DNA from: Hydrolagus colliei
Lineage: Eukaryota
Length of the DNA stretch: 64,000 nt
Reading direction: 5' to 3'
Assembly: GCA_035084275.1 (NCBI GenBank)
Contig: CM068759.1
Location: 8,618,001-8,682,000, forward strand
Shown here piece after piece: positions 2,230 through 63,111 of this stretch. The notes beneath the pieces are model-generated. The model was not told the DNA's origin. It did not search any database and saw only the letters and a list, made by a program, of their open reading frames with translations. The stretch's first letter is position 1. Each line of letters opens with the position of its first letter. The translations under genes and the position numbers were made by a program.

Positions 2230-2507
2230 ATCTGTTTATCAATGAAAATACACTATTTTCTTGTCCAAAGTTTAACAGTTAATCATTTGCTGCACAACAC
2301 TTTGTGACCACAGAGGGCTTAGCTGCTGACGCCACTGACTGCCCTCCCCTGCGAGCTACCGAGGTCATCATCATTCACTCAGATGGTATTAAAGGAGGAG
2401 AGAGACAACCGAGTGAATCAGACAGTCTAGAAGCCAAACCGCAGAGAGAAGTACTGCAGAGAGCTGCTGGAGACTGACCGATACAGCACAAAGAATCCCA
2501 GGACAAG
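2230..2507 (+). promoter_or_regulatory. Putative PCK1-A promoter and non-coding exon 1
   Basis: TATTAAA at ~2387, CRE-like TGACGCCA at ~2327, AGGTCA half-site at ~2362, HNF4-like GTCCAAAGTTTAA at ~2263, HNF1-like GTTAATCATTT at ~2278. Strong donor AAG|GTAAGC at 2507/2508, pairing with the acceptor at 2681/2682. Confidence 0.65.
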
Positions 2508-2666
2508 GTAAGCCGTTGCGAGCATCAATGTATTGCTTATGGTTGCTCTATGGGTTTTTTTATAGGGTGGTTGTTGGGACAGTAGAATTGTCCCCAATGT
2601 GTCTGTGCGGGTGCTCACTGCCCCGCAATGGAGCTCCCCAATTAAGTAATACAACTTGGACCATTC

Positions 2667-5600
2667 ATTGTGATTTTGCAGGGCTGTGAACAGTGTGGTG
2701 AGAAAGCCATGGCACCCCAGCTCAAGGCACAACCTCTGCACCCCTCCAAGGTGCTTCGTGGGGACCTGAACAGTCTGAGTGCTGGAGTCAGAGAATTCAT
2801 CGAGGAGAGTGTGCGGGTGTGCTGTCCAGACTTCATTCACATCTGCGATGGGAGCAGCGAGGAGAACAAGGAGATCCTGGCCATGATGGAGGAGCAGGGC
2901 ATTATCAAACGTCTGGTCAAGTACGAGAACTGGTGAGTGAGTTTCTTTCCTTCCAAAGCTCTTTTTGGGGAGGACTTTTCATGTTGATCTAAGCGGGAGT
3001 TGTTAGTGCTGAGATCCTGAGAGGTTTTCTCAATCACCTGGTGCCATGATTTAATGTCAGGGCTGGGTTCTAACCGCTCTGCTAGTCAGTACGCTTGGTG
3101 AAGGCACTGGTTTTGTGGCTGCCAGTGGTAGGATTCACAGGTTAACAAGTTATTCAGTTAGAGTTATGGCGAGAAAAAGGAAACCTAATACGGAAAATGT
3201 TCATTTCCTTTGTATTGGACACTTGTCAGTACGAAGAACAGAACAATCTTTTTGAGTGACATGTTTCTACAAAGGCAGACCGTGAAAATACACGAGTCAC
3301 AAAAGCTTCCCCCCCAAACAGGTTGGAATCTATCAGCATTTTGGGGAAAAGAAAGTAAGTGCAGATCACAAGGTCCCCTGCATCCTATAAAGAGTTCAGA
3401 ACATTTATATGAAGGTAACCAGATACCTTATAACAATCTCTCTCCCGGACGGCGATTTCAGACCTGAGACAGCTCGAGAGAGAGAGAGAATGTAACTGAA
3501 CTGAGTCCAAAGCTAAAATATACTTGATCCCAAATTCAGACACAGTACAGTAATATTATTCTATTCTCTTCTGATACTAATGAGGATTGACTTGCTTGAA
3601 TATGGGTTACTGATCAGTTCTTAAACTTGCCCCTTCCAGCTGGCTGGCTCGCACTGATCCAAGGGACGTGGCCCGTGTGGAGTCGAAAACCGTCATCATT
3701 ACCCCTGACCAGAGGGACACCATCCCCACCCCAAAGTTGGGAACCAGCCTGCTGGGACGCTGGCTGTCAGAGAAGGAGTTTGACAAGGCTTTCAATGCAC
3801 GCTTTCCAGAGTGTATGAAAGGTACCGAGCCTCAAACTGTCCGGTTAATAGTTACTCATTGGCCATCCTTTCTCAGGCATTAATTGGTTTATTATCATAT
3901 TGATTGTTTATAATTGTACACTCATGGAAAGCTTACATACGCAGAGAAGGAAAACATTCTGCCCATCATGTCTGAGCTGGTGTATTTTACCCCCTGATCA
4001 TTATCTTCTGTAATCTCATTCCCTGCTCTTTCCTCACTGGTGCTTTCCACTCAAATGCCTTTCCTTGCCGTGCCTATGCTTGTTCTTACTCCCCACTGCA
4101 GCTCTCTAATCTAATCTAATCTAATCCATTCCTTGCTCTTTCCACAATCAGTAGTATTTCTTTTGTGTGTGTACAAACTTTCCTTTAACAGACATTAACA
4201 GTCTCTTCCTTTCCATTGCAGGCCGTATAATGTATGTGATTCCATTCAGCATGGGACCTGTCGGATCTCCTCTGTCCAAGATAGGCATCCAGCTGACTGA
4301 CTCCCCCTACGTAGTGGCCAGCTCCAGGATTATGACCCGAATGGGATCAGATGTGCTGGAGGTTCTGGGCGATGAGCAGTTTGTGAAATGCCTTCATTCA
4401 GTCGGATGTCCTTTGCCACTAAAGAGTGAGTTTAGCCCCATTATTACAGTGTGAGCTTTGGGAGTGGGGAGGTGGAGGGAAGGGGAGGTGGAGGGAAGGG
4501 GAGGGAGGTGAGAGGGAGGGGGAGGGGAGGGAGAGGTTTATCCACCTTGTTCCAGGCCAGCTGTGTGGTTTCTTATTGACACTGAAGTAACAAAGTGTTT
4601 GTTGTGTTTAGAACCTCTTGTCAATAACTGGGCATGTAACCCAGAGCTGACGCTGGTGGCTCACATCCCCCAGCGCAGGGAGATCATCTCCTTCGGGAGC
4701 GGTTACGGAGGGAACTCGCTGCTGGGAAAGAAATGCTTCGCTCTGCGGATCGCCTCCAAAATAGGCCAGGAAGAGGGTTGGCTGGCCGAGCACATGCTGG
4801 TGAGAACACACAATACACAGTCACTCCACTTCAACCATGAGACGTCCTCCTGACGGGAAAGCGTTGTAATGAAAGTGAGGATTATTATTATTGTTATAAT
4901 AGAGGAGTATCTGAAGTATTCAGTAATAATCTGGATTCACAAAGCCAGGGATGGCTTTCAGATCACACCAGGTTGGTGTGGGAGGATTGTGAAATCAGGC
5001 AACAAGCAAATGTCTCACAACGGGAACTCTGTGAAATATGCACATGATTCAGCACAGGGAACGGGATGTGAGAATAGGAAACACGTTTACTCCATGTATG
5101 GATAGAACAGAGATCAGCTCCACATGGCACCACCATCAGCTGCTCATCAGGCTGTGCTCCTCCTCCACAGATCCTGGGAGTCACCAATCCCGAGGGCCAG
5201 AAGAAGTACATGGCGGCAGCGTTCCCCAGCGCTTGTGGCAAAACCAACATGGCCATGATGAGCCCGACGTTACCGGGCTGGAAGGTGGAGTGTGTGGGGG
5301 ACGACATTGCATGGATGAAATTCGACAAGCAAGGTTTGCTCATTTCCTGCCATCATTCACGGCAACCGGTTTGTCAGTATAACTTCACTGTTTACATGAA
5401 GGACAGACAATGTCAGTCACTCATTAATGGCCTTTTTCCCACAGGTAACCTGAGAGCCATCAACCCCGAAAATGGCTTCTTTGGTGTGGCTCCTGGAACA
5501 TCATGGAAAACCAATCCAAACGCCATGAAGACCATCAGCAGAAACACCATTTTCACCAACGTGGGGGAGACCAGTGACGGGGGGGTTTACTGGGAGGGCA

Positions 5601-6664
5601 TGGATCAGGCTCTGCCTCCCGGGGTCACCATCACTTCGTGGAAAAACAAAGAGTGGTCATCAAACTACGGAGAACCGTGTGCTCACCCCAACTCCAGGTT
5701 CTGCTGTCCGGCCAGTCAGTGTCCCATCATAGACCCGGCCTGGGAGTCCCCTGAAGGAGTTCCTATTGAAGCCATCATCTTTGGCGGAAGGCGACCAAAA
5801 GGTATTGTAGGCCGAGCTGTAGAGCCGGCTTCTCTCAGCCCCACAAAACACAAAGAGATCAGAGTCTGAAAGCAGAGCCTTCAAATGCTTTCTCTCTGTT
5901 CCAGGTGTCCCTCTGGTGTACGAAGCCTTTAACTGGCAGCACGGAGTGTTCATCGGAGCCGCCATGAGGTCAGAGGCTACAGCGGCTGCTGAGCACAAAG
6001 GTACCGGCGACACACAGTAACAACACAGGTCATTGACACACGGCACTGACACACACCGACAACATGCGGCAGCTAAACACATCAACAACACACATCAGCT
6101 CCTCACACACAACAATAATCTGCAGGAAAGGTTTAGAGAAATCTGCCATCAGCAGCATTGAATGCTCACAGATCTTGTCCTTGTCTCACAGGGAAGGTCA
6201 TCATGCACGATCCCTTTGCCATGAGGCCGTTCTTCGGCTATAACTTTGGCAAATACCTGACTCACTGGCTCAGGATCCAGCACCATCCCGGCGCCAAACT
6301 GCCCAAGATCTTCCACGTCAACTGGTTCCGCAAGGACAAGCAAGGCAACTTCCTGTGGCCAGGCTATGGGGAGAATTGCCGAGTGCTGGATTGGATGTGC
6401 AGGAGAATCAATGGAGAGGATTGCGCCACGCCGTCTCCTATTGGCCTCATTCCCAGAGACAACGCCCTCAATATCCGGGGCCTCGACAACATTAACTTGG
6501 CCGAGCTGTTCAGCGTGGAGAAAGGGTTCTGGGAAGAGGAAGTGAAAGCCATCAAGAAGTATTTTGAGGAACAAGTCAACGAAGACCTTCCCAGCGATGT
6601 GGCCAATCAGCTGGTGCAGTTAGAGAAGAAGATAAGGCGATTGTAACAGACACGTGACAGAATT
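2667..6664 (+). repeat. Arm 1 of a ~4 kb near-perfect inverted repeat (partner 11477-15724)
   Basis: Mirror ORFs have near-constant coordinate sums (18141-18144; 18391 beyond a 246-bp indel). The left boundary is attgtgattttgcag and the right boundary is cacgtgacagaatt. Confidence 0.95.
2709..6646 (+). CDS. PCK1: Phosphoenolpyruvate carboxykinase, cytosolic [GTP], copy A (622 aa, 8 coding exons)
   Basis: GT-AG exons read from the sequence: 2709-2932, 3640-3821, 4222-4425, 4612-4799, 5171-5333, 5445-5801, 5905-6000, 6192-6646. These sum to 1869 nt = 622 aa + TAA. Motifs present: FPSACGKTN (P-loop), [34 protein letters not shown]. It starts MAPQL with no mitochondrial presequence, which fits PCK1 rather than PCK2. 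Confidence 0.96.
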
Positions 6665-7940
6665 CCAGGGGGATCTCTATATTCCTCTATTTGTTTTGAT
6701 GAAATGGAACATCCCCTGATAACTTTTCAAGTGTAAAACATGTTTTAACATATTTCACAATTTTTTTTCACCTAACAATCAGGACATTTGCTGTGTTTGG
6801 ACAGCAAGCAGGAAGTTTTCTCTCACCTCCTCCAGAGCTGGTTTGTTCTTCCAGCTCTTTTAAAAGTTGATAGGAGAGCAGAAAAGTTGGTAGGAGAGCA
6901 GAACGGTGCCTATAACTGGCCTATTAACCTGCAGTGTATGGTCAGTGAGGTGCGGAGTGGGAGTGGGGGAGGGTGGGGGAGAGAGGAGGAATGACACCCA
7001 AATCCTTACTCAATATCCCCTGCTGAAAAGTGGACATTCATAGACATCCAATTTACAATCGCGCAGAATTATAGGTGCTAAACAAAATAGTTAATATTTT
7101 GATTGAAACTGAAAGTACTTTCAATGGACATTAAGATACAGAAGAGCAGAAACTTATCACAACCTATGGTAATAAGTAACGTCAGTAAATACATAAAACA
7201 CAGCTAGTCAAGAGTTTGTACAAGCTGGAAACATGAACATGCTTAAACTTACAAGAGTCTAGTTAAAGTGAGACCAGTTGTGCGTTCTGATTGCAATGCT
7301 GCATTTAATTTTGCAGACGCTAACCTGAGGTGTGTGTGTGTGATGATGATTGTCCTGCAGACTGGCCTTTTGCTAGTCTGGGCCCAGCACATGAGCAGTG
7401 ATCTTGGACCAGGGCGTTTTATGGCTGTGTTAGCCGTTGATCTTGGCCTTGTGGTTTGGAATCATGATTGTGGATTTTTAGTGACGTGTTTTTGGTTTGG
7501 GAGAAAATGAGGATCTCAAACTGCCAATTTGAGCAGAGAATAACAATGCACTCCCGAAAGGTTGCATCTGTAAAAGTGTAACTTTTAAATAAATGCCTTT
7601 GATTATTGTGAGATCTGTTGAATTATTGCAAAATGCTGAGCTACAGCAATCAGGCGAGCTGAGCGACATGTGGAATCATGTTGGATCAGACTTATTGCAT
7701 TATTGAATCAAAAACAATTTCTATTAAAATTAAATCCAATATTATTTTCTTAATGTTAAAACTGTCCCAATAATTCACAACAATTGTTTTTGGGGAAAAT
7801 AGAATGCTGTGTTTTTTGTAAGTGTGTTTCTGTAACTTATTGAACAGTAGATGTTTTAGTAGATGTTTGAGGTGTGTAAGGATATGTGTAGAGATTTGCC
7901 TCGGTTGATAATGCAGTGAGTAAACAAGGCTTCATTCAAA

Positions 7941-7968
7941 AATAAACTTTATTTTTTAGAAAAATAAA
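7941..7968 (+). terminator. Candidate polyadenylation signals of PCK1-A
   Basis: Two AATAAA (7941, 7963) followed by a U/GU-rich tract, implying a ~1.3 kb 3' UTR. Confidence 0.55.
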
Positions 7969-8819
7969 CACTTTGTCTCTTCTAGTTTGTTCTTACAAAG
8001 GATGATCCAAGGATCACACACTTGTATCTGACAGAATCTTCTGATAACTATATTATGTTTAGACCATTTACAGAGAAAACCTGAAGCTGCTAATCTCCAC
8101 AGGAGCCTCCAAACTGATCTCATTCTCCTGCTCACTCTTCAATGTTCTAATTTCACAGATGAGCCTTAAACCTGCAACCTTCTGACTCAGAGGTGAGACT
8201 GTTACCACTGAGCCAGGCTGACATGTTAAACCAAGGTTCCATCAGCCTGTTCAGGTGGACGTTAAAGATCCCTTGGCATCCCTTGGCCGAAAAGAGAAAG
8301 GAGTTTCCCTTTCCCAGTATTTTAACCAACAATCCCTCAAATAAAATTGATTAGTCACATCATGACTGGTCATGGAAAATGCTGTGCGGAATCTGCTGCC
8401 GGGTTCGCTTGCAAAATACACAGTCACCTACATTTTCCAATTGGGTTAAAAGAGAGCATTGGCGCTGGTCTTTACTTGAAGGAGACATGCAGATGCTTTC
8501 TCGAAGCTCCAGCTGGTCTTCAAAACAGCTATTTTCAAGCTGGTAGTTTGAACCAGACGTAGTGTATTTCTTCCTTCACCCGTCTCCCACCCAAAAAAAA
8601 CTCAGATAGAATGTGAATAAGAAAATAACCCTGCTGAACCTTTGATAGTAACTATAGTAATAATCCTTGCATTTGATATAGCGCTTTTTATGACTTCCAA
8701 CCGTCTCAAAGTGCTTCACAGAATATACAGTACTATAAAGTGAATTGAATGTACATCTGTTGGCAAAATGGGGAAAAATTAAGGATTTCAGGGCTACGGA
8801 ATTTGTTATGCATTTTAAC

Positions 8820-9060
8820 AAAACACAATACAATGCAATACATTTGTAAAGCGCTTTATACGTCAGGAGGATGTCCCAAGGGACTGAACAGTCAGGGATT
8901 CAATCCCAAGAGAGAGGGTAGCAGGATGACCGAAAACAAAATTGACAAGGGAGGTACTGAAACATGCCTTGAAGGAGGCAAGGGAGAGAGTGAAGCAAAG
9001 GGAATGTAGGATGGAGTTCCAGAGGCTAAAGGTGCTACTGCGGATGGTGAGTATAAGAAG
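8820..9060 (-). mobile_element. Degenerate L2 3' fragment
   Basis: catttgtaaagcgctttatacgtcaggaggatgtcccaagg matches the L2 terminus. Confidence 0.6.
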
Positions 9061-9154
9061 AGGTTTAAAATCATTACTAAAATTATTGCGTGATACCCTA
9101 AAGTGTATGTAAAACAATTGGGACAAACTTGATTGATCTTAAGAAGTAGAGTTG

Positions 9155-9525
9155 TGTAGCTCAGTGGTTAGAGCACTTGCCTTACAAGTGAGAGATGTGG
9201 ATTCAATTCCAGGTCAGGGCGAAACCTTGGGCAAGTTTCCTTACTCCATACACCTAATAATAATCCCTCAAAAATAAACAATAATAAATTGATCATTTCA
9301 TTCACGACTGTCCTCCTGACATGAAAGGCACTAGACAAGTGTAATTTTGTTATTGTTGTGTTATTGTTGTTTGTAGGACACTGTCGTGCATAATTGGCTC
9401 CCGCGTTTCGCCCACATATATACAGTCAATTCACTTTGTAGTATATTCTGTGAATCACTTTGAGAAGTCTAGAATATGTGAAAAGCTCTATATCCAATGC
9501 AAGGATTTTGATTATGATTATTATT
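9155..9525 (+). mobile_element. tRNA-derived SINE with L2-like tail
   Basis: A-box GTAGCTCAGTGG, B-box-like GGATTCAATTCC, a core shared with many copies, and a tail ending atccaatgcaaggat(tat)n. Confidence 0.8.
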
Positions 9526-9969
9526 AAGATATGTGTGAGGGAATTTAAACCAAATGGATTGAGGTCTGTGTTTTGGGGTTCTGTGATACGTTTGATGAAG
9601 ACTTGATGGATTGGTGTTATTCCTTTCCTCATTTGGAAGAATGTGTCTAACAGTCTATCTCAAGCAAATGAAATGGACATTGTATGGACATACAATCAAT
9701 CAACTAAGACCCAAGGCCTCAGCATTCATAAGATCAGAGACATGTGGCTTCAAGTTACCTGATGTTGTCCTGATTAATTGAACTTGGTGCTTTGCAGTCT
9801 GCTTTGACAAGATGTTGAAAGGAATTTACGTTGTTAAGGCATCAAGGAAGGACAATTAATTGTCTAATTGAACTTTTCACACTTTATATCAGAGGAACTT
9901 TCAAATTTGTGAGATTAAACCTTGATAACCTTAGGGGCCTGCAGTGTATGGAAAGATGATTGGATAAAA

Positions 9970-10338
9970 ATTAATAATTCTTGCATTTGATGTAATCGCT
10001 TCATCACATCTTAGAGATGACTCAAAGCGCTTCACAGAATATACTGCAAAGGAATTGACTATATATTTTCTGGGCAAAACATGGTAGGCAATTGCGCACA
10101 ACAGTGTCCCACAAACAGTCATGGATTGGTGGATTGCAATAATCCCTTCAAAAAATGTTTTACTTATACGGTAAATCAATCTAGGACTATTTGTGAGACT
10201 TTTCTGTGTGCAATTAATTGGCTGCCGCAAAATATAAAGTCATTTACATTTTTTATATATTCTGTGATGCGCTTTGAGACAGCTCAATGATGCGATAAGG
10301 TGCTATATCAAATGCAAGGATTATTATTATTATTATTA
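9970..10338. mobile_element. Two SINE 3' halves in inverted orientation
   Basis: Minus copy ~9970-10135 and plus copy ~10175-10338 of the same SINE family. Confidence 0.7.
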
Positions 10339-11224
10339 AAAGTCAAACACAGTCTCGAGGAGTAAAAATATGAGAATTTTTTTTATTTTCTATATAAAGT
10401 ATAAATTTTACTGCTAAAACATATTGAAGTAAAGTACAGTGGAGTTTGCGGTAGAAAAGTAACACCTGATTATAAAAGATTAATGCTCCTTTGCTTCGTT
10501 AAGATAATTCAGATTTTCATTGTGATTTGATAGTGAAGCATAGGGAGCACAAAACAGTCACTGTGCTGCTCAGCTCAGCTTGTGTTCAAAATGAACAATT
10601 TTCCTTGAACTAAAGTTAACAAGCTTTTTCATTGTAAAAACATACTGTAAACACTCCCCACCTCACCCCCTGCTGAGGGTATAGCAGACATTTGCTGGAA
10701 GCCTAAACTGTCCTTGTTTCCGTACTCTCCAGTACACGCTGGCCCCTTAAAAACCTGGAGCAGGAATAAGAAGGTCACGTGCGTTAACATGTCCAGAACT
10801 CCCTGCGGAGAAATGCTGTTTGCAGAGAGTTTTTTTTTCCACGGTTGTGATTTGAACTAGAAAGGTGCAGCTAATCCTAATCTTTCTACCCATCTTTTAT
10901 CATCATCTGATAATCAAGATTAAAATTCTCAATGAAATAACCCTCTCGAGAGCGGCTGATAGGGCGACAGAAAATATCGTGCTTACTTCGAAAATCAGAT
11001 AGTGAACAAACAGTTGAAGTAGGTCCAATTCCGGACTTGCCGTACTCTTCCTCAAGCGATATCTACTGTGTGTTAGCCATTGCTGTATTTAATGTATCTA
11101 TTAAACAGAGCATCAGACCAGTGGTAAGAACATGATATGTTCTTAAACATGTGTTTTCTGGACTGCGCTGCTCAGTAAGCAGCTTGTTACTGTACTAATC
11201 TCCTGCTGAGCTGTTTCTTTCTGT

Positions 11225-11230
11225 TTTATT
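11225..11230 (-). terminator. Candidate polyadenylation signal of PCK1-B
   Basis: AATAAA on the minus strand ~265 nt after the stop codon. An alternative lies at 10382-10387. Confidence 0.35.
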
Positions 11231-11476
11231 TTTGTGACGATCGCCACCAAAATAAGTAAACGGTAAAGTGTGCTCTTGTGTGATGTGAACGTCCCTTGAT
11301 TGGACATACACTGAATGGCATCATGTGTGCGTTCAGAATGCCCCCATGTATCTTAAGACAACGTAATCATATCGATCGTGATTCACGCGTGTTGAATTGA
11401 ACACATATGGCATTAATCAACAACATGACATTACACACCGTTGTCAATGAAAACCAACAAAACTAAATCTGTTGCT

Positions 11477-14400
11477 AATTCTGTCACGTGTCTTTTACAA
11501 TCGCCTTATCTTCTTCTCTAACTGCACCAGCTGATTGGCCACATCGCTGGGAAGGTCTTCGTTGACTTGTTCCTCAAAATACTTCTTGATGGCTTTCACT
11601 TCCTCTTCCCAGAACCCTTTCTCCACGCTGAACAGCTCGGCCAAGTTAATGTTGTCGAGGCCCCGGATATTGAGGGCGTTGTCTCTGGGAATGAGGCCAA
11701 TAGGAGACGGCGTGGCGCAATCCTCTCCATTGATTCTCCTGCACATCCAATCCAGCACTCGGCAATTCTCCCCATAGCCTGGCCACAGGAAGTTGCCTTG
11801 CTTGTCCTTGCGGAACCAGTTGACGTGGAAGATCTTGGGCAGTTTGGCGCCGGGATGGTGCTGGATCCTGAGCCAGTGAGTCAGGTATTTGCCAAAGTTA
11901 TAGCCGAAGAACGGCCTCATGGCAAAGGGATCGTGCATGATGACCTTCCCTGTGAGACAAGGACAAGATCTGTGAGCATTCAATGCTGCTGATGGCAGAT
12001 TTCTCTAAACCTTTCCTGCAGATTATTGTTGTGTGTGAGGAGCTGATGTGTGTTGTTGATGTGTTTAGCTGCCGCATGTTGTCGGTGTGTGTCAGTGCCG
12101 TGTGTCAATGACCTGTGTTGTTACTGTGTGTCGCCGGTACCTTTGTGCTCAGCAGCCGCTGTAGCCTCTGACCTCATGGCGGCTCCGATGAACACTCCGT
12201 GCTGCCAGTTAAAGGCTTCGTACACCAGAGGGACACCTGGAACAGAGAGAAAGCATTTGAAGGCTCTGCTTTCAGACTCTGATCTCTTTGTGTTTTGTGG
12301 GGCTGAGAGAAGCCGGCTCTACAGCTCGGCCTACAATACCTTTTGGTCGCCTTCCGCCAAAGATGATGGCTTCAATAGGAACTCCTTCAGGGGACTCCCA
12401 GGCCGGGTCTATGATGGGACACTGACTGGCCGGACAGCAGAACCTGGAGTTGGGGTGAGCACACGGTTCTCCGTAGTTTGATGACCACTCTTTGTTTTTC
12501 CACGAAGTGATGGTGACCCCGGGAGGCAGAGCCTGATCCATGCCCTCCCAGTAAACCCCCCCGTCACTGGTCTCCCCCACGTTGGTGAAAATGGTGTTTC
12601 TGCTGATGGTCTTCATGGCGTTTGGATTGGTTTTCCATGATGTTCCAGGAGCCACACCAAAGAAGCCATTTTCGGGGTTGATGGCTCTCAGGTTACCTGT
12701 GGGAAAAAGACCATTAATGAGTGACTGACATTGTCTGTCCTTCATGTAAACAGTGAAGTTATACTGACAAACCGGTTGCCGTGAATGATGGCAGGAAATG
12801 AGCAAACCTTGCTTGTCGAATTTCATCCATGCAATGTCGTCCCCCACACACTCCACCTTCCAGCCCGGTAACGTCGGGCTCATCATGGCCATGTTGGTTT
12901 TGCCACAAGCGCTGGGGAACGCTGCCGCCATGTACTTCTTCTGGCCCTCGGGATTGGTGACTCCCAGGATCTGTGGAGGAGGAGCACAGCCTGATGAGCA
13001 GCTGATGGTGGTGCCATGTGGAGCTGATCTCTGTTCTATCCATACATGGAGTAAACGTGTTTCCTATTCTCACATCCCGTTCCCTGTGCTGAATCATGTG
13101 CATATTTCAAAGAGTTCCCGTTGTGAGACATTTGCTTGTTGTCTGATTTCACAATCCTCCCACACCAACCTGGTGTGATCTGAAAGCCATCCCTGGCTTT
13201 GTGAATCCAGATTATTACTGAATACTTCAGATACTCCTCTATTATAACAATAATAATAATCCTCACTTTCATTACAACGCTTTCCCGTCAGGAGGACGTC
13301 TCATGGTTGAAGTGGAGTGACTGTGTATTGTGTGTTCTCACCAGCATGTGCTCGGCCAGCCAACCCTCTTCCTGGCCTATTTTGGAGGCGATCCGCAGAG
13401 CAAAGCATTTCTTCCCCAGCAGCGAGTTCCCTCCGTAACCGCTCCCGAAGGAGATGATCTCCCTGCGCTGGGGGATGTGAGCCACCAGCGTCAGCTCTGG
13501 GTTACATGCCCAGTTATTGACAAGAGGTTCTAAACACAACAAACACTTTGTTACTTCAGTGTCAATAAGAAACCACACAGCTGGCCTGGAACAAGGTGGA
13601 TAATCCTCTCCCTCCCCTCCCCCTCCCTCTCACCTCCCTCCCCTTCCCTCCACCTCCCCCTCCCTCTCACCTCCCCACTCCCAAAGCTCACACTGTAATA
13701 ATGGGGCTAAACTCACTCTTCAGTGGCAAAGGACATCCGACTGAATGAAGGCATTTCACAAACTGCTCGTCGCCCAGAACCTCCAGCACATCTGATCCCA
13801 TTCGGGTCATAATCCTGGAGCTGGCCACTACGTAGGGGGAGTCAGTCAGCTGGATGCCTATCTTGGACAGAGGAGATCCGACAGGTCCCATGCTGAATGG
13901 AATCACATACATTGTACGGCCTGCAATGGAAAGGAAGAGACTGTTAATGTCTGTTAAAGGAAAGTTTTGTACACACACAAAAGAAATACTACTGATTGTG
14001 GAAAGAGCAAGGAATGGATTAGATTAGATTAGATTAGAGAGCTGCAGTGGGGAGTAAGAACAAGCATAGGCACGGCAAGGAAAGGCATTTGAGTGGAAAG
14101 CACCAGTGAGGAAAGAGCAGGGAATGAGATTACAGAAGATAATGATCAGGGGATAAAATGCACCAGCTCAGACATGATGGGCAGAATGTTCTCCTTCTCT
14201 GCGTATGTAAGCTTTCCATGAGTGTACAATTATAAACAATCAATATGATAATAAACCAATTAATGCCTGAGAAATGATAGCCAATGAGTAACTATTAACC
14301 GGACAGTTTGAGGCTCGGTACCTTTCATACACTCTGGAAAGCGTGCATTGAAAGCCTTGTCAAACTCCTTCTCTGACAGCCAGCGTCCCAGCAGGCTGGT

Positions 14401-15724
14401 TCCCAACTTTGGGGTGGGGATGGTGTCCCTCTGGTCAGGGGTAATGATGACGGTTTTCGACTCCACACGGGCCACGTCCCTTGGGTCAGTGCGAGCCAGC
14501 CAGCTGGAAGGGGCAAGTTTAAGAACTGATCAGTAACCCATATTCAAGCAAGTCAATCCTCATTAGTATCAGAAGAGAATAGAATAATATTACTGTACTG
14601 TGTCTGAATTTGGGATCAAGTATATTTTAGCTTTGGACTCAGTTCAGTTACATTCTCTCTCTCTCTCGAGCTGTCTCAGGTCTGAAATCGCCGTCCGGGA
14701 GAGAGATTGTTATAAGGTATCTGGTTACCTTCATATAAATGTTCTGAACTCTTTATAGGATGCAGAGGAACCTTGTGATCTGCACTTACTTTCTTTTCCC
14801 CAAAATGCTGACAGATTCCAACCTGTTTGGGGGGGAAGCTTTTGTGACTCGTGTATTTTCACGGTCTGCCTTTGTAGAAACATGTCACTCAAAAAGATTG
14901 TTCTGTTCTTCATACTGACAAGTGTCCAATACAAAGGAAATGAACTTTTTCCTTATTTGGTTTCCTTTTTCTCGCCATAACTCTAACTGAATAACTTGTT
15001 AACCTGTGAATCCTACCACTGGCAGCCACAAAATCAGTGCCTTCACCAAGCGTACTGACTAGCAGAGGGGTTAGAATCCAGCCCTGACATTAAATCAATG
15101 CCAGTCACCATATGAATCTACAACCTTGCGCCTAACTGAGGGTGTTTACCCACAGAATGCACAGTCAATTGTTGCTACAATATATTCTGTGAAGCGCTTT
15201 AAGACGTTACCAAGACGTGCTAAGGCACTATATCAACTGCAAGGATTACTATTTATTATTAGTATCCTCAAGTCTGGCTCAGTTGTAAAGTTAACTGTGA
15301 ATGTGCCGTTGGTGGAGCCCTGTGTCAGACACTCGCTGTTTCATGGCACCAGGTGATCGAGGAAAACCTCTCAGGATCTCAGCACTAACAACTCCCGCTT
15401 AGATGAACATGAAAAGCCCTCCCCAAAAAGAGCTTTGGAAGGAAAGAAACTCACTCACCAGTTCTCGTACTTGACCAGACGTTTGATAATGCCCTGCTCC
15501 TCCATCATGGCCAGGATCTCCTTGTTCTCCTCGCTGCTCCCATCACAGATGTGAATGAAGTCTGGACAGCACACCCGCACACTCTCCTCGATGAATTCTC
15601 TGACTCCAGCACTCAGACTGTTCAGGTCCCCACGAAGCACCTTGGAGGGGTGCAGAGGTTGTGCCTTGAGCTGGGGTGCCATGGCTTTCTCACCACACTG
15701 TTCACAGCCCTGCAAAATCACAAT
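11477..15724 (-). repeat. Arm 2 of the PCK1 inverted repeat
   Basis: Reverse complement of 2667-6664 with scattered SNPs and an extra 246 bp at 15098-15343. Confidence 0.95.
11495..15682 (-). CDS. PCK1: Phosphoenolpyruvate carboxykinase, cytosolic [GTP], copy B (622 aa, 8 coding exons)
   Basis: Minus-strand exons: 15682-15459, 14503-14322, 13920-13717, 13529-13342, 12970-12808, 12696-12340, 12236-12141, 11949-11495. Splice sites and frame are intact. The only amino acid difference from copy A that I found is GRTMY (B) vs GRIMY (A), plus several silent changes. Confidence 0.95.
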
Positions 15725-15989
15725 CACACCAGGTTACAATGGGAAACACACCTTCATTGTTCAGGTCTTTTCATCTATAAGAACTGTTCAAGAATACAGC
15801 AAATCAGCCTAGGTTTTTATCATCGTGTTGTTAAATCAATGTCACCAGAATGCACAGATTTGTTGAACCACTTTTGAGAGGAAGTAAAAAAACACAATCA
15901 ATGAAAATTGTCATATAACATATCAGACGCCAAGGTAAATATTTTAATATGTTTAAAGTTTTCTGTGTTTCTGAGGTAGATTGACTTAC

Positions 15990-16300
15990 CGGTTTTCCGT
16001 GCTTTAAAGGAGCTTCAATGAGCTTGCTCAAATGTCCTCTTCCTCCTTCTGGTTCTCAGCAATGTCAAGCTTGAACTGCTCACTTTATCTGCTGAGCTCC
16101 CCAAAGTTGTTGAGCCCTTTATGTACAGAAATCACGAGCCTTCTCATTAGCTGGGGATGTGGGTGTTGTCTTGGTCACCATTGATAAGGGACACACCTCC
16201 TCAAACGTAGTTAATGCATAATCTAATAAAAAAATAGTCTGTAGACAATATCTGACCCTGGATCAACAATCAATAGCATAAAGTTTTTTTTAGCTGAGGT
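15990..16300 (-). promoter_or_regulatory. Putative PCK1-B non-coding exon 1 and promoter (unrelated to copy A)
   Basis: Minus-strand donor CCG|GTAAGT at 15990/15989, pairing with the acceptor at 15710/15709. TATA-like TACATAAAG at ~16117-16125, GATA motifs at ~16083 and ~16183, HNF1-like GTTAATGCATAA at ~16210, DR1-like TGACCCTGGATCA at ~16252. Confidence 0.5.
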
Positions 16301-17462: not shown

Positions 17463-20336
17463 CAACAACAACAACAACAACAATTTACATTTATAGAGCG
17501 CCTTTCACGTCGGGAGGACGTCCCAAGGCGCTGAACAGGAGGCGTGTGACCCGAGCTGGGAGGGGAGTGTTTGGGAAGGGGTGAAACACGAAGGGGAGGT
17601 AAAAGAGTTCGGGGTGGAACAAAAGGCACGATCGAAGAGGAAAGTCTTCAAACCGGCCTTGAAAGAGGAAAGGGAAGAGACGAAACGGAGGGTTTGAGGG
17701 ATGGCATTCCATAAGGTGGGAGCGGAGAAACTGAAGGCCCGGCCTCCGATGGTGGGGCGGTTCGGGCGGGGGGCTTGGAGCAGGCCAAGTCCTGTTGAAC
17801 GGAGGGTCCGGGTGGGCGTGTAGGGGGAGAGTAGATCGGTTAAGTAGGATGGGGCAAGGCCGAGTAAGGCCTTGTAGGTGAGGACGAGGATCTTAAACTC
17901 GATCCTCTGGAGGATGGGGAGCCAGTGGAGACGGGCGAGGGTGGGGGTTATGTGGTCGCGGAGGCGGGTGCGGGATAGTACACGGGCTGCAGAGTTTTGG
18001 ATGGCCTGCAGCCTATGAATGGAGGAACTGGGGAGGCCGATTAGGAGAGAATTTCCGTAGTCCAGCCGTGAGGTGATGTATGCGTGCACAAGTGTTTCGG
18101 CAGCATGGGGGGTAAGATAATTACGGAGCCTGGCAATGTTGCGCAGATGGAAATAGGCGGTGCCGGTCAAGGCGCGGATGTGGGGGAGGAAGGAAAGTTT
18201 TTGATCGAACATGATGCCGAGGTTCCTGATTGGCTATGTGAGGTGGAGAGTGCAACCTTGGATATTGAGGCTGGCAGCGCCCGATGTGCAGAGGCGCTGG
18301 CTTGAGCCAATCAGGAGGGCCTCGGTCTTATTCACGTTCAATTGCAAAAAGTTGTCCCTCGTCCACGACTCGATGTCGGACAGACATGCTGTCAGAACAT
18401 CGATCGTCTGGGGGTTGAGGGATGAGGCAGAAAGGTACAACTGGGTGTCATCCGCATACATGTGGAAATTTACCCCATGTCTGCGGATGACGTCACCCAG
18501 AGGGAGCGTGTAAAGGGTGAAAAGGAGGGGACTGAGGACAGAGCCCTGTAGGACGCCGTGGGAAACTGTGCGGGGGTTTGAAGAAAAACCATTGGAAGTA
18601 ACAAAATGTAAACGGTGGGTCAAATAAGAATGGAACCAGTCAAGGACTGTGCCTTGAAGGTTGAGGTGGGAGGAAAGACGTTGAAGGAGGATGGTGTGAT
18701 CGACTGTGTCGAACGCAGCAGACAGGTCAAGGAGGACGAGGAGGCAGAGGGAGCCATGGTCACAGGCGGTTAGGATGTCATTTGTGACCTTAACCAGGGC
18801 AGTTTCTGTGCTTGTGGATAGGGCGGAAACCTGATTGGAGGGGTTCAAGAAGTGAGTGATTTTAAAGGAAAGAGCGGAGCTGGGAGGCAACCACTCTTTC
18901 AAGGACCTTGGATAGAAACGGGAGGTTGGAGATGGATCGATAACTTGATGGTTGCGACACATCAAGGGAGGGTTTCTTCAGGATAGGGGTGATGGTGGCT
19001 GTTTTAAGGGAGGTAGGGACGGTGCCTGAGGATAGGGAAAGGTTAATGGTGTCAGAAATGAGTGGGGCTAACAAATGGAGCTGTGTGCGGAGGAGGGGGG
19101 TGGGGATGGGGTCCAATGAACACGTGGTGGGTTTCATGGAGGTGATTGTTTTTGTGACTGAAAGCGGGGTGGTGGGGTTGAAAGTGTTAAATGGGGGGGT
19201 GAGTAGGGGTTGAGGTAGCTGATGAGGGCGCGGAGGTGGAGGAGTGGTGGGGGGAGGAAACCGCAGAGCAGATTTTCTCAATTTTGGACTCGAGGAAATC
19301 CAGCATCTCCTCACAACGAACGTTTGAGGAGAGGATCTGCGAGGTGAGGCGGGGGGGCGGAGGAGCTTGTTGGTGGTGGCGAAGAGGAGGCGGTGGTTGT
19401 CCTTCGCTTCCAGGATTATCCTGGAATAGAAGGCTGATTTGGCGGTGGTTAGGGCGGAGCGGTAAAATTTTATGCGGTCCAGCCAGATTTGCCGGTGGAT
19501 CGTGAGGCCAGATTTGAGCCAGGTGCGTTCAACTGCTCTCACTTGGCTTTTGAGGGAACGGAGGTGAGTTGTGTACCATGGTGATGATCGGGAGTGGGAG
19601 ACGGTTTTGGAGGTGAGGGGGGCCAGGGTGTCGAGGGTAGTGGAGAGGGTGTTGTGGAGGGCGGTGGAGGCAGAGGATGGGTCGGTACAAAAAGAATGCC
19701 ATTGTGGGAAGAGGTCGGAGGTTTCTAGGGCAGAGGTGAAAGTTTGAGGGGGAATCTTCTTCCAGGGCCGGTAGAAGATGGTGGTGGGTTTGGAAGTGGA
19801 GGGGGGAGGGATAGAGGTGTTGCAGGAAATGAAAAAATGGTCGGGAATGGCCTTGTCTGTGATGGTGACGCCAGAGACGTTGAGGCCTCGTGTGATCACT
19901 AGATCGAGAGGATGGCCGTGAGTGTGGGTGGCAGTGTTAATATGAAGGGAGAAGTTGAAAGACGAAAGTAAAGAGGAAAATTCTGAGGAAATGGGGCAGG
20001 AGGGGGTGAAATGGAGGTTGAAATCGCCAATAATAATAAGGCGATCAGAGGAGGCACAAAGGGAAGTTAAAAGTGAAGAAAAGTCTGAAATGAAAGTGGG
20101 GGAGGGTTTGGGGGGGCGATAAACTAATAGGATTTTGAAAGAATTGTGGGAGGAGTGAGAGAGGGTGAGTTGTTCGAAAGAGGGGAAGGAGCCGGAGGAA
20201 TAGGGGGATAGGGCGAGGGATGACTTTGAGATGAGGGCCACGCCACCGCCACGACGGTTGGGTCGAGGAGCATGGTGGAATGTGTAGTTGGGTGGTGTGG
20301 CTTCAACAAGGGGAAAAGTGTCGCCTGGGGTGAGCT
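17463..20336 (-). mobile_element. L2-clade LINE, 5'-truncated, ORF2 (APE endonuclease + reverse transcriptase) broken by frameshifts
   Basis: ORFs 18862-20376 (VYRPP, GDFN, LDLVIT), 18234-18965 (LLDLSAAFDTVDH, QGSVL, YADD) and 17505-18212 (L2 C-terminus, RLDYGNSLL, LHWLP). The 3' end reads ...GGCGCTCTATAAATGTAAA(TTG)n. Confidence 0.93.
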
Positions 20337-22060
20337 TATTCGTTATCTCTGGGTCACGGGATTCAAACAATTGCAATGCTTGTACCAGTAGAAGGTTAGT
20401 CCAACATGGGTTATGTGTGGATGGATTATCTTTAAAAGAAAGTACAAAACTACAGGGATATGGAGAAAAGACGGGTGGTTTATATAGAGAATATCAATAT
20501 TTATCTACATAACTAGAAATGTGCTACAAGGAAGAAGTTAACATTGAGGTTGTTAACATTACAGCATCAGCTCACAATCTCATTCCCTCAATGGGACTTG
20601 GGATACATGTAGGGCTCTACAACGTTTCACATCAACAGGCGTAAGACATTCCTTACCTTTCCCAGATTTCTATTAATGTGATACTCACTGTTCAATGGCA
20701 GTTTCCATGACTCAATCCCGTGATACAAAAAGCAGTGATATGCATCTTAGTGACTGAACAGGGGGAAATATCAAAGCTGAAAAAAAGCATGCGAGGGACG
20801 TCTCAGAGGGGCAATTATAAATATAATATTCTAAACTGATCAACACAGAATTATACTTTCTTATGGCAAGGGAGTGGGATTGCAGGGCACATTCAAGATG
20901 TCATGGGCAATTTTAGGACAGATAGAAGTATTTCTTTGCACAAACTGGAACAGTTTATCAAGAAGTGCAGAGCTCAAGGCTCAAAAATGCCTCAAATCTG
21001 AAATTGGAATTTGCTGGTTAGAGGGGACCAATCATTGTGTCTGGAACTCAGTAACTTTTCTGATGAGTTGACAAGTATCTTGCTGACAGAAATTATTTGG
21101 AGTTTACTTTTTAAAGGAATGATATTTATTTTAAGAGGTAAAGTCTGAGGTGGCCATTTGCAGAGAGAAATTTTGTAGGTATCTTTTATTTAATTTACAT
21201 TGTGTATTTTTATCCACAGTGTGGTGGTTGTTTGCTAAGTCAATCACATTTTGCAGATAGTGGATTGTGTTTCCTTTGGAAAGGAGCCATGTTTGTTCAG
21301 GACGTGATATCTGAGATAGGTAGACATAAGAGTACGCAAGTGGCATTATCTAGATGCTTCGATCACGCTCACAGAAAAGACATGGTGTTGCTTCTGATTT
21401 ATGCAAACATTGACACAAAATCTCTGGAAATCAAACCAGTACAGTTTGGGTGCAGCTTGAAAACTCTCAATTTCTGGTGACTACTTGACTTGTTTTTTTT
21501 TTTTAATTGCCTGAAAAAACCTTGCCAATGGGGGAAAAAAGTGCCATAGGTGCAAAAACAATATAGTGCTGTATATTAATTCCTCCCGCAACCTAGTGTG
21601 ATTGCAATTCAAGGGTCAATGTATTTTTGGAAAACATATAACCCTCAAAATGATTGACGATAACACTAGTTATTTATTCTGTGAATCACCTGACTCTGAT
21701 GTATATTACATTTTTATCATTTCACATGTATGAACTGTGTTTTGGTTTGAAACTTTTGTACATTCGAATGGCGTTTCCTGACACACTTATCACGTTACAT
21801 ATGGTCCTAATATTTTATTCCAGTTTATGTCTCAAACAATTCACCCAAATTGCAATTCACCCATATCACTCTTGCCATTCAGCTTTCATCTCAATCTTTC
21901 TCCCAGTGGCTGTCACTGATGGGTAGCAGCATAAAGAACTCCAATAAAGCCTTGATTATTTTTTACCTTACTTCTGTCACTACTAGCTCCCACCCATCAA
22001 ATCTCAGTTCCAGCAGCAGTGGGGGACAGGGGTGGGGGGGGTGAGGACGTAAGTGGTGGT

Positions 22061-27068: not shown

Positions 27069-27539
27069 TTCTGACCGTGAATTTATGTTTTCATATGTGT
27101 ATGTGTATACAATGGGACATATTCTCCTATATTTTTAAGTCAAATGGGATGCTCGCTAAATTGCCGAATCAGCTGAATTCAGATCCTCTGAAGTCGTACT
27201 CGGGTAGGTTTCAGTCGGGAGGACGTCCCACGAAGCAGGACATTTGGAGGTTTGTACCCGACCTGGGTTGCATTTGGGGGTTGCATTCGAAAAGGGCAGG
27301 GGCCCTCAGGTGGTGGGGAAAAAATGCCCAAGCCACGGTCAACCATCATTTTGACATGAGCCTTGAAGGAGTGAGTGAGTGAGTGGTTCAGAGTGTATGC
27401 TGCTGATAGCACTCAGTGCTATATAAATGTATTACTGTATTCAGAGAATGAGTGTTATTCAAATATCCAAACTGTTACTCAGCCTGGGTGTGGTTACTCG
27501 CTGATGCTCCTCCCCCATCACTGGCCTATCATTAGACTC

Positions 27540-27640
27540 ACCTGCTCAGGCGCCCGGGAAGGGGATGTGTACTGCGCATGCGCACGGGGTGGGGTTTCCC
27601 GCCTCTTGCGAGAGGGCGCGAAGCGACAACACGAGCAGCG
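27540..27640 (+). promoter_or_regulatory. CpG-rich CTCFL promoter and non-coding first exon
   Basis: Perfect NRF1 palindrome TGCGCATGCGCA (27573-27584), E2F-type GGCGCCCGGGAA (27549-27560) and TTTCCCGCC (27595-27603). Donor GCG|GTGAGC at 27640/27641; acceptor at 28774/28775. Confidence 0.65.
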
Positions 27641-27659
27641 GTGAGCAACCGTCACCTTT

Positions 27660-28345
27660 TCTCCCCCACACACCTCACCCCCCCCCACCCCCACACACAC
27701 ACACCTTACCCCCCCACACACGCACCCCACCTCACCCCCCCCACACACACCCCTCACACCCCCACCCTCCACACACACACCCCTCAAACCCCCCCACACA
27801 CACACCTCACCCCCCCACACACACACCCCTCAAACCCCCACACACACACACCTCACCCCCCCACACATTCCCCCACACATACACACCCCTTACCCCCCCA
27901 CACACGCACCCCACCTCACCCCCCCCCACACACACACACCCTCTCAACTACCCCTCCCACCTCAGGCCCTCCACACACAGCTCACAACCCCCACCTCGCC
28001 CCCACAAACACACACACCCCGTCTCAGACACCTCGACACACACCTCACCCCCCCGCACTGAGCACATACACCACCTCCCGCCTCACCCCCCCCCCCCCCC
28101 CCATCTCAGTCCCCCGCCTTAGCCATCCCTACACACACCACCCTGACCCCCATCCCCACCTCACCGCCACCTCTGCTCCCTCCATTCCCACACACACTGT
28201 CCACCTCATTCCCCCTAACCCCCCCCACCACCACACCCCCTCAGCCACCTCCACACACTCACACACACCCCACCGCCTGCCTCATCTCCCCTTCCTCGGG
28301 CCCCCCGACTCTACACCTCACCTCTCTCTCACCACCCCACTCAGC
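27660..28345. repeat. C/A-rich low-complexity tract (G-rich on minus strand)
   Basis: Degenerate cacacacccc(t) units. Confidence 0.85.
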
Positions 28346-28387
28346 CCTAGACAAACATTGTTTTATCAGCATATAGTAGACTAGCTG

Positions 28388-28784: not shown

Positions 28785-39326
<10,542 letters not shown>

Positions 39327-61280: not shown

Positions 61281-61578
61281 TTACTGCACGCGGTCAGGCT
61301 GCAGCTGTTGAGCCTGGTACTGGAGAAGCGTTGTGTTGCCGGCAGGGGCCGAGGTTCCAGCGGTGATGGGCTGCTGTAGGGCCGAGTAACCATAGCCGAT
61401 GTAGCCGGCGGCCGGGGAGGCGGTGTAGGGATACTGATCGAAGGCTGCGGTGGCGTACTGGGCGTAGGCAGCCGAGGTGCTATAGTCAATGTAAGGGGAG
61501 CTCAGCGACTGCAGCTGGGTGGGAAGCACGACCCCGGGCTGCACGTAGGCCTGTGGGTACACATAATGGGTGGCGAGC
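61281..61578 (-). CDS. RBM38: RNA-binding protein 38, last coding exon (rest of the gene lies beyond the window)
   Basis: Acceptor tcctccccatag at 61579. Translation [17 protein letters not shown]...SLSSPYIDY...[10 protein letters not shown]...QQLQPDRVQ* matches the RBM24/38 C-terminus. The lack of RBM24 poly-Ala runs and synteny with CTCFL/PCK1 favour RBM38. Confidence 0.88.
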
Positions 61579-63111
61579 CTATGGGGAGGAAGACAACAGA
61601 TTAGTTGAAGCTGAGATAAACACAACAGCTGGCGTTTCAGAGCTGTAAGCCTTCAATTACTGCCAAGTGCAGAGACTGTTTTGTTCTTTTTTTAAATCGG
61701 CTCAGTAATGGCCCACAAGTAACTATTTTCCAATATGATCACGGGATCTTTAATATCCGCATGAACGAGGCACCTCGGCCCATCGCATGGCAGCACTCGT
61801 CCTGAACATTTTCTTTGGCTCAAAGCACTTGACAAGGTAAGGAAAGGCAGAGAGGTGACCAGATGAGTCGAAATGAGGCAAGACAAGGACAGGGAATGTA
61901 TTAGCATGGCCTGTGAGCTCAAGATCATCACCATGAGCTGTGACCCAAACTCAGCTAAAGGAGATCCCCGATGGACCAATTGGTGAATGCGTTGACAAGT
62001 GGGAGGCGCAGAGCTCAGGGGGCAAACTCGGTCTCCAGGTTAGACTGGCTCAGCTGACATTGGTCAGAGCTGGGACCCTCAGATCAGGCAGACACTAATC
62101 TCAGGGAGGCAGCAGAGAGAGGACAGCACCTGAGGTTCTGTCCCGGTCTGACAAACAGCCAAGGAGGGAAACGCTTCACACTTGTTTTTAAACAGGTTAA
62201 ATGTCTGCAGCTCGGTGTACTGAGACCCAAAGTGGAATGGCTTCCTGTGGCCACTCAGGAAGAGTGAAGCCTCACTCAGGCCCTCTCCACCGCCTTCCAC
62301 AGTGCATCCGCCTGTGCCCCCACCCTACCCCCCCCCCACGCCTCTCCTTCTTCTCCCCATACCCCACACAATCTCCTCTCTTCAAACTCTCATCAACCCA
62401 CCAGAGTGATCGCAGCAATTCAGGCAAATCAGCAGACCTTGTGAACGCTGGTCAATGTCACAGACCCGTCTCCAGCTCCACAACACTGTCTATTTACAGC
62501 AGCATTTTTGAAGCGATTCCAAAGCAATGAACGAACGGCCTGATCTTGCTGTTTAATGTGAGGCCGAGGAAGGCTGGGTAGCCGGCAGCATGGCTATACA
62601 TGGCTCTGTGCGTCTGCAGCATTCACTGGTTGCTGGGTGTTACTCAAAGCTTTTATCCACTTTATTCAAAGTGGTGGGGGGCGGGGGGAGGGATGGGGGG
62701 GAAGAGGATTATGACAGGTTTAATAGGACAACTTCTGCTTAATCCTCTGCTCAGTGGGGATTTAGGCCCCAGGCCAGCACCAAGCATGTGTACAAATGTT
62801 TATCACTAAGATTCCAGCCAGGATTCTGCAGCAACAGATCGGGCTGTAAGATCCCGTGAAACCAATCATAAAGAAAGCTCCACGCCAACAAGGCAACAAG
62901 CCACTCACCATCACTGATAACAATTGCATTGGATCGAATCGTCAAAATTCCAAAACCATTCGTAGGATTTATTGTAAAATAATTGCATGTGTGTACTAAC
63001 CTTCGCACAGGGCAACACCCCGATCAGCAGTCAAATAACAAGCCACAAAGGAGGAGAGGGGTGGGTGATCACATGGGTGGGAGAAGAGGTAGGTTTTTAG
63101 GTGGGATTTGA

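Follow-up and report, generated by a model that had tools for sequence, protein, structure and literature searches.

A palindromic pair of PCK1 genes in Hydrolagus colliei, probably kept alike by gene conversion within the gene body

The PCK1 locus of Hydrolagus colliei

A stretch of 64,000 nucleotides (nt) from Hydrolagus colliei (NCBI GenBank assembly GCA_035084275.1, contig CM068759.1, forward-strand positions 8,618,001 to 8,682,000), here called the window and used for all coordinates, contains two PCK1 genes. The two copies, A and B, lie tail-to-tail within the single inverted repeat detected in the window by repeat search and local BLAST. Its reverse-complement arms, of 3998 and 4248 nt, flank a unique spacer, which makes the locus a palindromic gene pair, and the sole run of N in the window (32370-32544) is distant from it. 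The arms, the spacer and the coding sequences (CDSs), each encoding 622 amino acids (aa), are as follows.

2667-6664, plus strand: arm A, putatively homogenised gene body, from inverted-repeat alignment
11477-15724, minus strand (read from 15724 to 11477): arm B, from inverted-repeat alignment
6665-11476, no strand: spacer, unique, 4812 nt, with two differing 3' flanks and four copies of a family resembling short interspersed nuclear elements (SINEs)
2709-6646, plus strand: CDS of copy A, 622 aa; exons 2709-2932, 3640-3821, 4222-4425, 4612-4799, 5171-5333, 5445-5801, 5905-6000 and 6192-6646
11495-15682, minus strand: CDS of copy B, 622 aa; exons 15682-15459, 14503-14322, 13920-13717, 13529-13342, 12970-12808, 12696-12340, 12236-12141 and 11949-11495

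Each copy consists of eight coding exons with GT-AG borders, and its 1869-nt CDS comprises 622 codons and a stop, with no internal stops. Introns 2-8 range from 103 to 707 nt. The spliced model was searched against databases exon by exon, and the exon pieces match Pfam PEPCK_N (PF17297) at positions 1-217 and PEPCK_GTP (PF00821) at positions 8-356, in order and all with scores above the curated cut-offs. The products thus carry the N-terminal and C-terminal P-loop domains of GTP-dependent PEPCKs in the expected order. The exons are collinear with 622-aa shark PCK1 proteins and the start codon aligns to residue 1. Among solved structures, the best matches to the exon 4 peptide are human and rat cytosolic PEPCK (E 2.3e-33), ahead of the chicken PEPCK chain 2faf (E 3e-23), the mitochondrial form. 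The nearest named proteins are 'cytosolic' PCK1 of Callorhinchus milii (C. milii) and of sharks. Given the lack of an N-terminal presequence, the closest relation to PCK1 and the position at the PCK1 locus, both genes are identified as cytosolic PCK1 rather than mitochondrial PCK2.

The two arms are very similar throughout, introns included. Global alignment over the 3998 positions of arm A finds 30 substitutions, four 1-bp indels and one 246-bp insertion in arm B (15098-15343), the last being a feature that the original prediction for this locus did not mention. The (CTAAT)4 and (GA)7 tracts are equally long in the two arms. Of the 30 substitutions, seven fall in coding sequence and six of these are synonymous. 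The single non-synonymous difference lies at codon 138, which reads ATA (Ile) in copy A (4227-4229) but ACA (Thr) in copy B; as all 49 other PCK1 sequences compared have Thr, the state in copy A is derived. The proportions of synonymous and non-synonymous sites that differ (pS and pN) are 1.46% and 0.069%, respectively. With both copies neutral, at most one non-synonymous change among seven would arise with a probability of 0.0007, and with one copy neutral the value is 0.008; both CDSs have thus been constrained since they were last identical. The locus therefore holds two intact coding sequences under purifying selection.

Limits of the homologous block and the unique gene ends

Homology between the copies begins 15 nt upstream of the exon-2 acceptor (exon 2 of copy A starts at 2682) and ends 18 nt past the stop codon (which ends at 6646 in copy A). 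Beyond these limits the flanks do not align. Local alignments of 400-1000 nt, each compared with 200 shuffles, placed the 5' flanks at z-scores of -0.8 and 0.4 and the 3' flanks at 3.0, the latter with a score of 17 that falls below the best shuffle (19). Residual flank homology was considered and rejected on these alignments. The original prediction had described two near-identical, intact 622-aa PCK1 genes arranged tail-to-tail, with homology limits at 2667/15724 and 6664/11477, microsatellites of equal length and unalignable flanks. The arm alignment and intact reading frames bear out the first of these claims, the limits were recovered exactly, and the microsatellite tracts and shuffle-tested flanks agree with the remainder.

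Outside the block, each copy has its own set of candidate 5' and 3' features.

2387-2394, plus strand: TATA-like motif TATTAAAG of copy A, 120 nt upstream of the putative exon-1 donor
2395-2507, plus strand: region holding the putative non-coding exon 1 of copy A, with donor gacaag|gtaagccg at 2507/2508
2508-2681, plus strand: intron 1 of copy A, of which the last 15 nt alone (2667-2681) are common to copy B
7588-7593, plus strand: first poly(A) signal of copy A, 942 nt past the stop
16116-16123, minus strand: TATA-like motif CATAAAGG of copy B
15990-16115, minus strand: region holding the putative non-coding exon 1 of copy B, with donor aaaccg|gtaagtca at 15990/15989
15712-15989, minus strand: intron 1 of copy B, unique save for the 13 nt next to exon 2 (15712-15724)
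11225-11230, minus strand: first poly(A) signal of copy B, 265 nt past the stop

In both copies the TATA-like motif sits 120-133 nt upstream of the putative exon-1 donor. The putative exon 1 sequence of copy A is unique to that copy. Neither putative exon 1 contains an ATG in the frame of the start codon and both contain in-frame stops. The proposal that each copy possesses its own exon 1 and TATA-like box holds at the level of motifs, namely the donors, the TATA-like strings and the in-frame stops. An N-terminal extension like that of rays, described below, was considered for the window copies and rejected, given the in-frame stops and absence of an ATG in both putative exon 1s. Strings resembling HNF1 sites, cyclic AMP response elements (CRE) and nuclear-receptor half-sites were seen by eye upstream of both TATA-like motifs, and no claim is made for them. 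The two copies would be transcribed from different promoters with different regulation, amounting to what the original prediction called two independent regulatory programmes. The best hint of separate regulation is indirect and comes from other species, as their annotation gives one copy its own coding first exon.

PCK1 pairs across cartilaginous fishes

Relatives were found by a chain of searches. A 219-aa stop-free open reading frame (ORF) at 5210-5866, which traverses intron 6, served as the query; its best match is a partial bamboo-shark PCK1 (68%) and none of the 120 matches listed is from the same species. From partial shark PEPCKs the chain led through an alignment of two of these to full-length shark PCK1 and then to clusters of chondrichthyan PCK1 proteins. 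The clusters contain 23 chondrichthyan species, 20 of which, C. milii included, have two distinct annotated PCK1 proteins. In 19 of these 20 species both copies are on a chromosome-size contig of the same length, and their accession numbers are mostly neighbouring. Such pairs include XP_007882620/XP_007882639 of C. milii, XP_038658865/XP_038658868 of S. canicula, XP_055508019/020 of Leucoraja and XP_059836370/371 of Hypanus. The pairs are labelled 'cytosolic [GTP]' and 'cytosolic [GTP]-like' in public annotation. Rhincodon, Narcine and Chiloscyllium plagiosum have only one full-length PCK1 protein, with an extra partial PCK1 on a 12-kb contig in C. plagiosum.

Copies within a species are 94.3-99.5% identical (20 species), and PCK1 proteins of different orders are about 81-93% identical. 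The sevengill shark protein, for example, shares 93% identity with catshark, 91% with whale shark, 88% with ray and 83% with C. milii. For the window copies the values are 95.3-95.5% with C. milii, 81-83% with sharks and rays and 77% with coelacanth, which places the window in a holocephalan distinct from C. milii. One residue separates copies A and B, compared with four for the C. milii pair. All four comparisons between the window and C. milii copies give 573-574 matches over 601 residues (27-28 differences), leaving the copies of one species equidistant from those of the other.

A maximum-likelihood tree was built from 45 chondrichthyan and four bony-vertebrate rows, none of which was dropped; among them are an additional UniRef entry for C. 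milii and a Heptranchias copy located on a small contig. Chondrichthyan PCK1 forms one clade with support of 100/99. The two copies are starred sister rows in 9/20 species. They group by copy across species in six (Leucoraja with Amblyraja, and four myliobatiforms), and the grouping is unresolved or unsupported in the remaining five. Paralogs within species are therefore closer than orthologs between species in the window, in C. milii and in the nine sister pairs.

Differences between copies are concentrated at the ends of the protein. Summed over the 20 pairs they amount to 9.5% in the first coding exon and 3.3% in the last, with 0.7-1.7% in the six between. This is the picture expected if conversion corrects the middle of the gene and cannot correct its edges. 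The original prediction had called for a comparison in which gene bodies would cluster by species and ends by copy; run on proteins, this comparison turned out as predicted, as seen in the nine sister pairs and in the discordant first exon of batoids. Parsimony would favour a single duplication underlying the pairs of sharks, rays and chimaeras.

Conflicting histories within the batoid gene

In all batoid orders sampled, one PCK1 copy has lost its start codon (M to L) and has an N-terminal peptide coded upstream. This peptide is ~24-41 residues long and is conserved in stingrays, sawfish and skates, with a W-W motif, a C-x-C motif and an acidic run (database proteins P0242, P0350, P0351, P0355, P0356, P0243 and P0365). 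Several sharks also have one copy annotated with its own upstream-coded N-terminus. The peptide might change the localisation or regulation of PCK1.

The two batoid copy types were defined by this N-terminal feature, or by a nearby signature in Amblyraja, whose model is truncated. These labels were chosen after viewing the N-terminal alignment, and their signature overlaps with the first partition. With them, one change on the tree is enough to separate the copy types in the first coding exon (aa 4-75; support 86; 0/500 label shuffles were as low). Residues 76-471 and 472-622 require five changes each on the same labels, and a copy-type clade is rejected for both by the approximately unbiased (AU) test, with p 1.35e-8 and 1e-7, respectively. 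The remainder of the batoid protein sorts by species or family. Batoid PCK1 hence has a mosaic history, with a first exon that groups by copy and other parts that reject this grouping. The conflict between first exon and remainder decides for conversion over separate duplications in the batoid lineage. On this protein-level evidence, the first coding exon appears to have escaped the conversion domain in batoids.

The SINE-like insert and divergence between the arms

The 246-nt insertion of arm B is one of 24 matches in the window (23 besides the insertion) to a SINE-like family with a core of ~120-190 nt.

15098-15343, minus strand: SINE-like insertion, 246 nt, in intron 2 of copy B only, from arm alignment and family matches
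614-735, 8644-8767, 9964-10078, 10225-10338 and 44102-43984: examples of further SINE-like matches, from family matching

Identity between the insert and the majority sequence derived from 17 local copies is 70.9%, within a family range of 66-88%. The insert is among the most diverged family members, and the arms around it differ by 1-3%. Its divergence suggests that it is old. Recent copying from A to B would need a young insert, since the insert is in B only, and recent copying from B to A would mean that A had lost the 246 nt precisely. Neither assumption is necessary if conversion acted around an old insertion.

At non-coding and third-codon sites the copies differ by 1.05% (29/2752). The differences are spread unevenly, with 12/404 sites near the insert and 1/628 in the last 1.2 kb at the 3' end. 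A permutation test free of segment cuts gives p 0.031 for the densest stretch and p 0.022 for the longest difference-free stretch. Taken alone, these signals within the window are moderate, and they agree with the comparative result.

Origin and maintenance of the pair

The most likely explanation, to which we give a probability of roughly 0.8, is an old convergent PCK1 pair kept alike by repeated interlocus gene conversion between the inverted arms, with the gene ends evolving independently. The original prediction had proposed the same history. It is supported mainly by the prevalence of pairs across the class, the equidistance of the C. milii copies and the batoid discordance, to which the insert, the patchy divergence and the flanks add. 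From the observed structure of the locus, the clustering of copies by species and the discordance along the batoid gene, we infer both the conversion mechanism in this species and the age of the pair.

Under this explanation, a break in one arm would be repaired by copying from the other. Because conversion needs homology on both sides of the break, the outer edges of the block would escape correction and erode inward until reaching sequence fixed by selection. Here those limits would be the exon-2 splice acceptor and the stop codon. The short introns 2-8, lying between conserved exons, would be carried along, and intron 1, exon 1, the promoter and the 3' untranslated region (UTR) would fall outside the block and evolve independently. 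A crossover between inverted arms would flip the spacer rather than delete a copy. With spacer inversion and no gene loss as the outcome, the pair would be structurally stable, which may explain its wide retention. Such a flip of 6665-11476 would also exchange the 3' parts and 3' UTRs of the two genes between their promoters.

Several points weigh against this history. The comparison with relatives is at the protein level and uses public annotation. Support for conversion in holocephalans is indirect, and two independent duplications retain some residual probability. Kadota et al. 2020 (PMC7471279), in a passage based on an older short-read bamboo-shark assembly, report one-to-one PCK1 orthology. 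Copy-specific residues shared by sharks and rays agree in polarity at seven of nine usable sites by hand count, a usable site being one at which the same two residues distinguish the copies both in a shark pair with an extended copy and in a batoid pair. A one-sided sign test on these sites gives ~0.09, which is post hoc and not significant, and a deep identity of the copies between sharks and rays is suggestive only. Within the window, a five-segment chi-square test for patchiness is not significant (p 0.069) and the shared introns are not enriched in GC (0.441 vs. a window mean of 0.443). GC-biased conversion was rejected on the latter comparison.

The alternative that survives best, though unlikely, accepts conversion and holds that one copy is a passenger, silent or randomly transcribed and intact only through repair from the working copy. 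A silent copy can stay intact through conversion alone, and the exon 1s and TATA-like boxes of the window are motifs only. Against a passenger stand the retention of the pair across roughly the whole class and the finding that six of the seven coding differences in the window are synonymous. Furthermore, the upstream-coded N-terminus annotated for one copy in several sharks and all sampled batoid orders, with a peptide conserved among rays and skates, implies a separate and used first exon in those species.

A recent lineage-specific partial duplication is improbable. In this scenario the segment from late intron 1 to just past the stop was duplicated in inverted orientation 4.8 kb downstream, the ~1% divergence reflects its age, and the flanks were never duplicated. 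The absence of any trace of flank homology, the low arm divergence that is fairly even over five segments, and the unenriched GC content of the shared introns are all compatible with such an event. It would however require breakpoints 15 nt from an acceptor and 18 nt from a stop codon, a double coincidence, and, as the insert is as diverged as other old copies of its family, either a deletion of precisely 246 nt from A or a young insertion with an old appearance. The two near-identical C. milii copies, equidistant from those of the window, mean that the event would have had to occur twice in holocephalans, and it would have had to occur many more times in sharks and rays. Batoids show directly that a pair can be old and yet have young-looking bodies.

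An assembly artefact, in which one PCK1 was assembled twice through haplotype duplication or a fold-back chimera, has very little to recommend it: the arm divergence of ~0.8% falls in the allelic range, but each arm has its own unalignable 5' and 3' flank, the 4.8-kb spacer is unique with no nearby gap, the arms differ by the 246-nt insert and 30 substitutions, five of 12 listed sequencing runs (two samples, two studies, one organism) hold at least half of the sampled words of 6100-12000, with shares of 0.82-0.90, and C. milii and 18 further species, assembled independently, have both copies annotated on one chromosome.

Comparison with known systems

Inverted arms around a unique spacer are known from primate sex-chromosome palindromes, which are >99% identical through intrachromosomal conversion. 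Their arms differ from those of the PCK1 pair in spanning tens of kb to Mb, with whole genes and flanks, whereas the PCK1 arm is one gene body cut at the ends of its CDS. Closer parallels exist in Drosophila. According to passages of a review (PMC3924832), Amy-p and Amy-d form a mirror-image linked pair whose CDSs are homogenised within species and whose flanks are independent, and the pair is older than the species carrying it. The PCK1 pair resembles this account in being inverted and linked with a homogenised body and free flanks, but is an intron-rich vertebrate gene for gluconeogenic PEPCK, with introns 2-8 homogenised as well and an apparently class-wide distribution. Passages of the same review describe the Hsp70Aa/Hsp70Ab and Hsp70Ba/Bb genes as inverted paralogs homogenised by ectopic gene conversion, with the inverted orientation causing breaks to be resolved by conversion. 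The PCK1 pair, as interpreted here, resembles those described genes in being inverted paralogs homogenised by conversion, although Hsp70 genes are intronless and shared silent polymorphisms are a feature of Hsp70. By analogy with Amy and Hsp70 of Drosophila, the PCK1 genes would be a palindromic pair undergoing concerted evolution.

The process is not new in broad terms, as concerted evolution of inverted duplicates has been described since the work on Drosophila Amy and Hsp70. The raw fact of the pairs is also already in public databases, though apparently unremarked. A literature search, mostly without subscription journals, turned up no description of a second PCK1 gene or of conversion at PCK1 in cartilaginous fishes. 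A study of gluconeogenesis in the cloudy catshark treated 'pck1' as a single gene, measured with a single set of primers and probe. Annotation gives this catshark two PCK1 proteins that are 99.4% identical, and the reported signal is thus probably the sum of the two genes.

Genomic neighbourhood

A CTCF-family gene and several repeat-derived features occupy the window beyond the pair.

28785-37190, plus strand: CTCF-family gene, head-to-head with copy B, with an N-terminal ORF and six zinc-finger exon-like stretches
30720-30947, 31610-31810, 34438-34698, 35325-35528, 36304-36549 and 36933-37190, plus strand: the zinc-finger stretches, stop-free and exon-like
17505-20376, minus strand: non-long terminal repeat (non-LTR) retrotransposon remnant with Exo_endo_phos and RVT_1 domains, between copy B and the CTCF-family gene
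27518-28384: long low-complexity CA/CT-rich stretch with 'PHTHT' repeats in its ORFs, just upstream of the CTCF-family gene start
33003-33443, minus strand: 146-aa ORF with a BED zinc finger (Pfam zf-BED, E 5.9e-08), antisense inside the CTCF-family gene and near the N run

Human PCK1 and CTCFL are also head-to-head, and because copy B has the same arrangement with the CTCF-family gene it is probably the positional ortholog of the single PCK1 of bony vertebrates, with copy A the inverted extra. The bony-vertebrate gene encodes the same cytosolic type of enzyme and has the same CTCF-family neighbour. It differs in number, as the four outgroups used gave one copy each and cartilaginous fishes two. 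The gene at 28785-37190 would by synteny be the CTCFL orthologue; passages of Kadota et al. 2020 (PMC7471279) report CTCFL in elasmobranchs and CTCFL-PCK1 synteny kept in human, turtle and bamboo shark.

Pfam gave no match for the ORFs at 28785-29237 (plus strand) and 61281-61622 (minus strand). The latter (61281-61625 in its full span) has a Tyr/Ala/Gln-rich end reminiscent of the RBM38/RBM24 C-terminus. An RBM38-like ORF would fit the human gene order, RBM38-CTCFL-PCK1. No RNA recognition motif (RRM) was found in the 64-kb window. The ORF at 33003-33443 is probably a hAT-type transposase remnant. Simple sequence similar to that at 27518-28384 flanks the N run on both sides, at 32156-32955.

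Implications for PCK1 biology in cartilaginous fishes

PCK1 is a textbook example of an enzyme controlled mainly at transcription. Two copies that make identical protein under unrelated promoters and 3' UTRs offer a natural experiment, one where regulation is split and the enzyme is unchanged. The pair is also a clean vertebrate case of a conversion domain trimmed to coding limits, and one that shrinks further in batoids. In practical terms, coding-region quantitative polymerase chain reaction (qPCR), in-situ probes and short-read RNA sequencing cannot separate copies that are 94-99.5% identical (20 species).

A wider reading joins these strands, and we hold it tentatively, at slightly less than even odds. 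Conversion would have kept the palindromic pair ever since its origin, as its ends diverged to give two promoters that respond to different tissues or hormones. One copy in rays and skates would then have lost its start codon and gained a conserved N-terminal peptide, possibly altering the site or action of the enzyme. If this is true, published shark 'pck1' expression data mix two genes, and the pair would be among the longest-running instances of concerted evolution of a single-copy-type metabolic gene in vertebrates.

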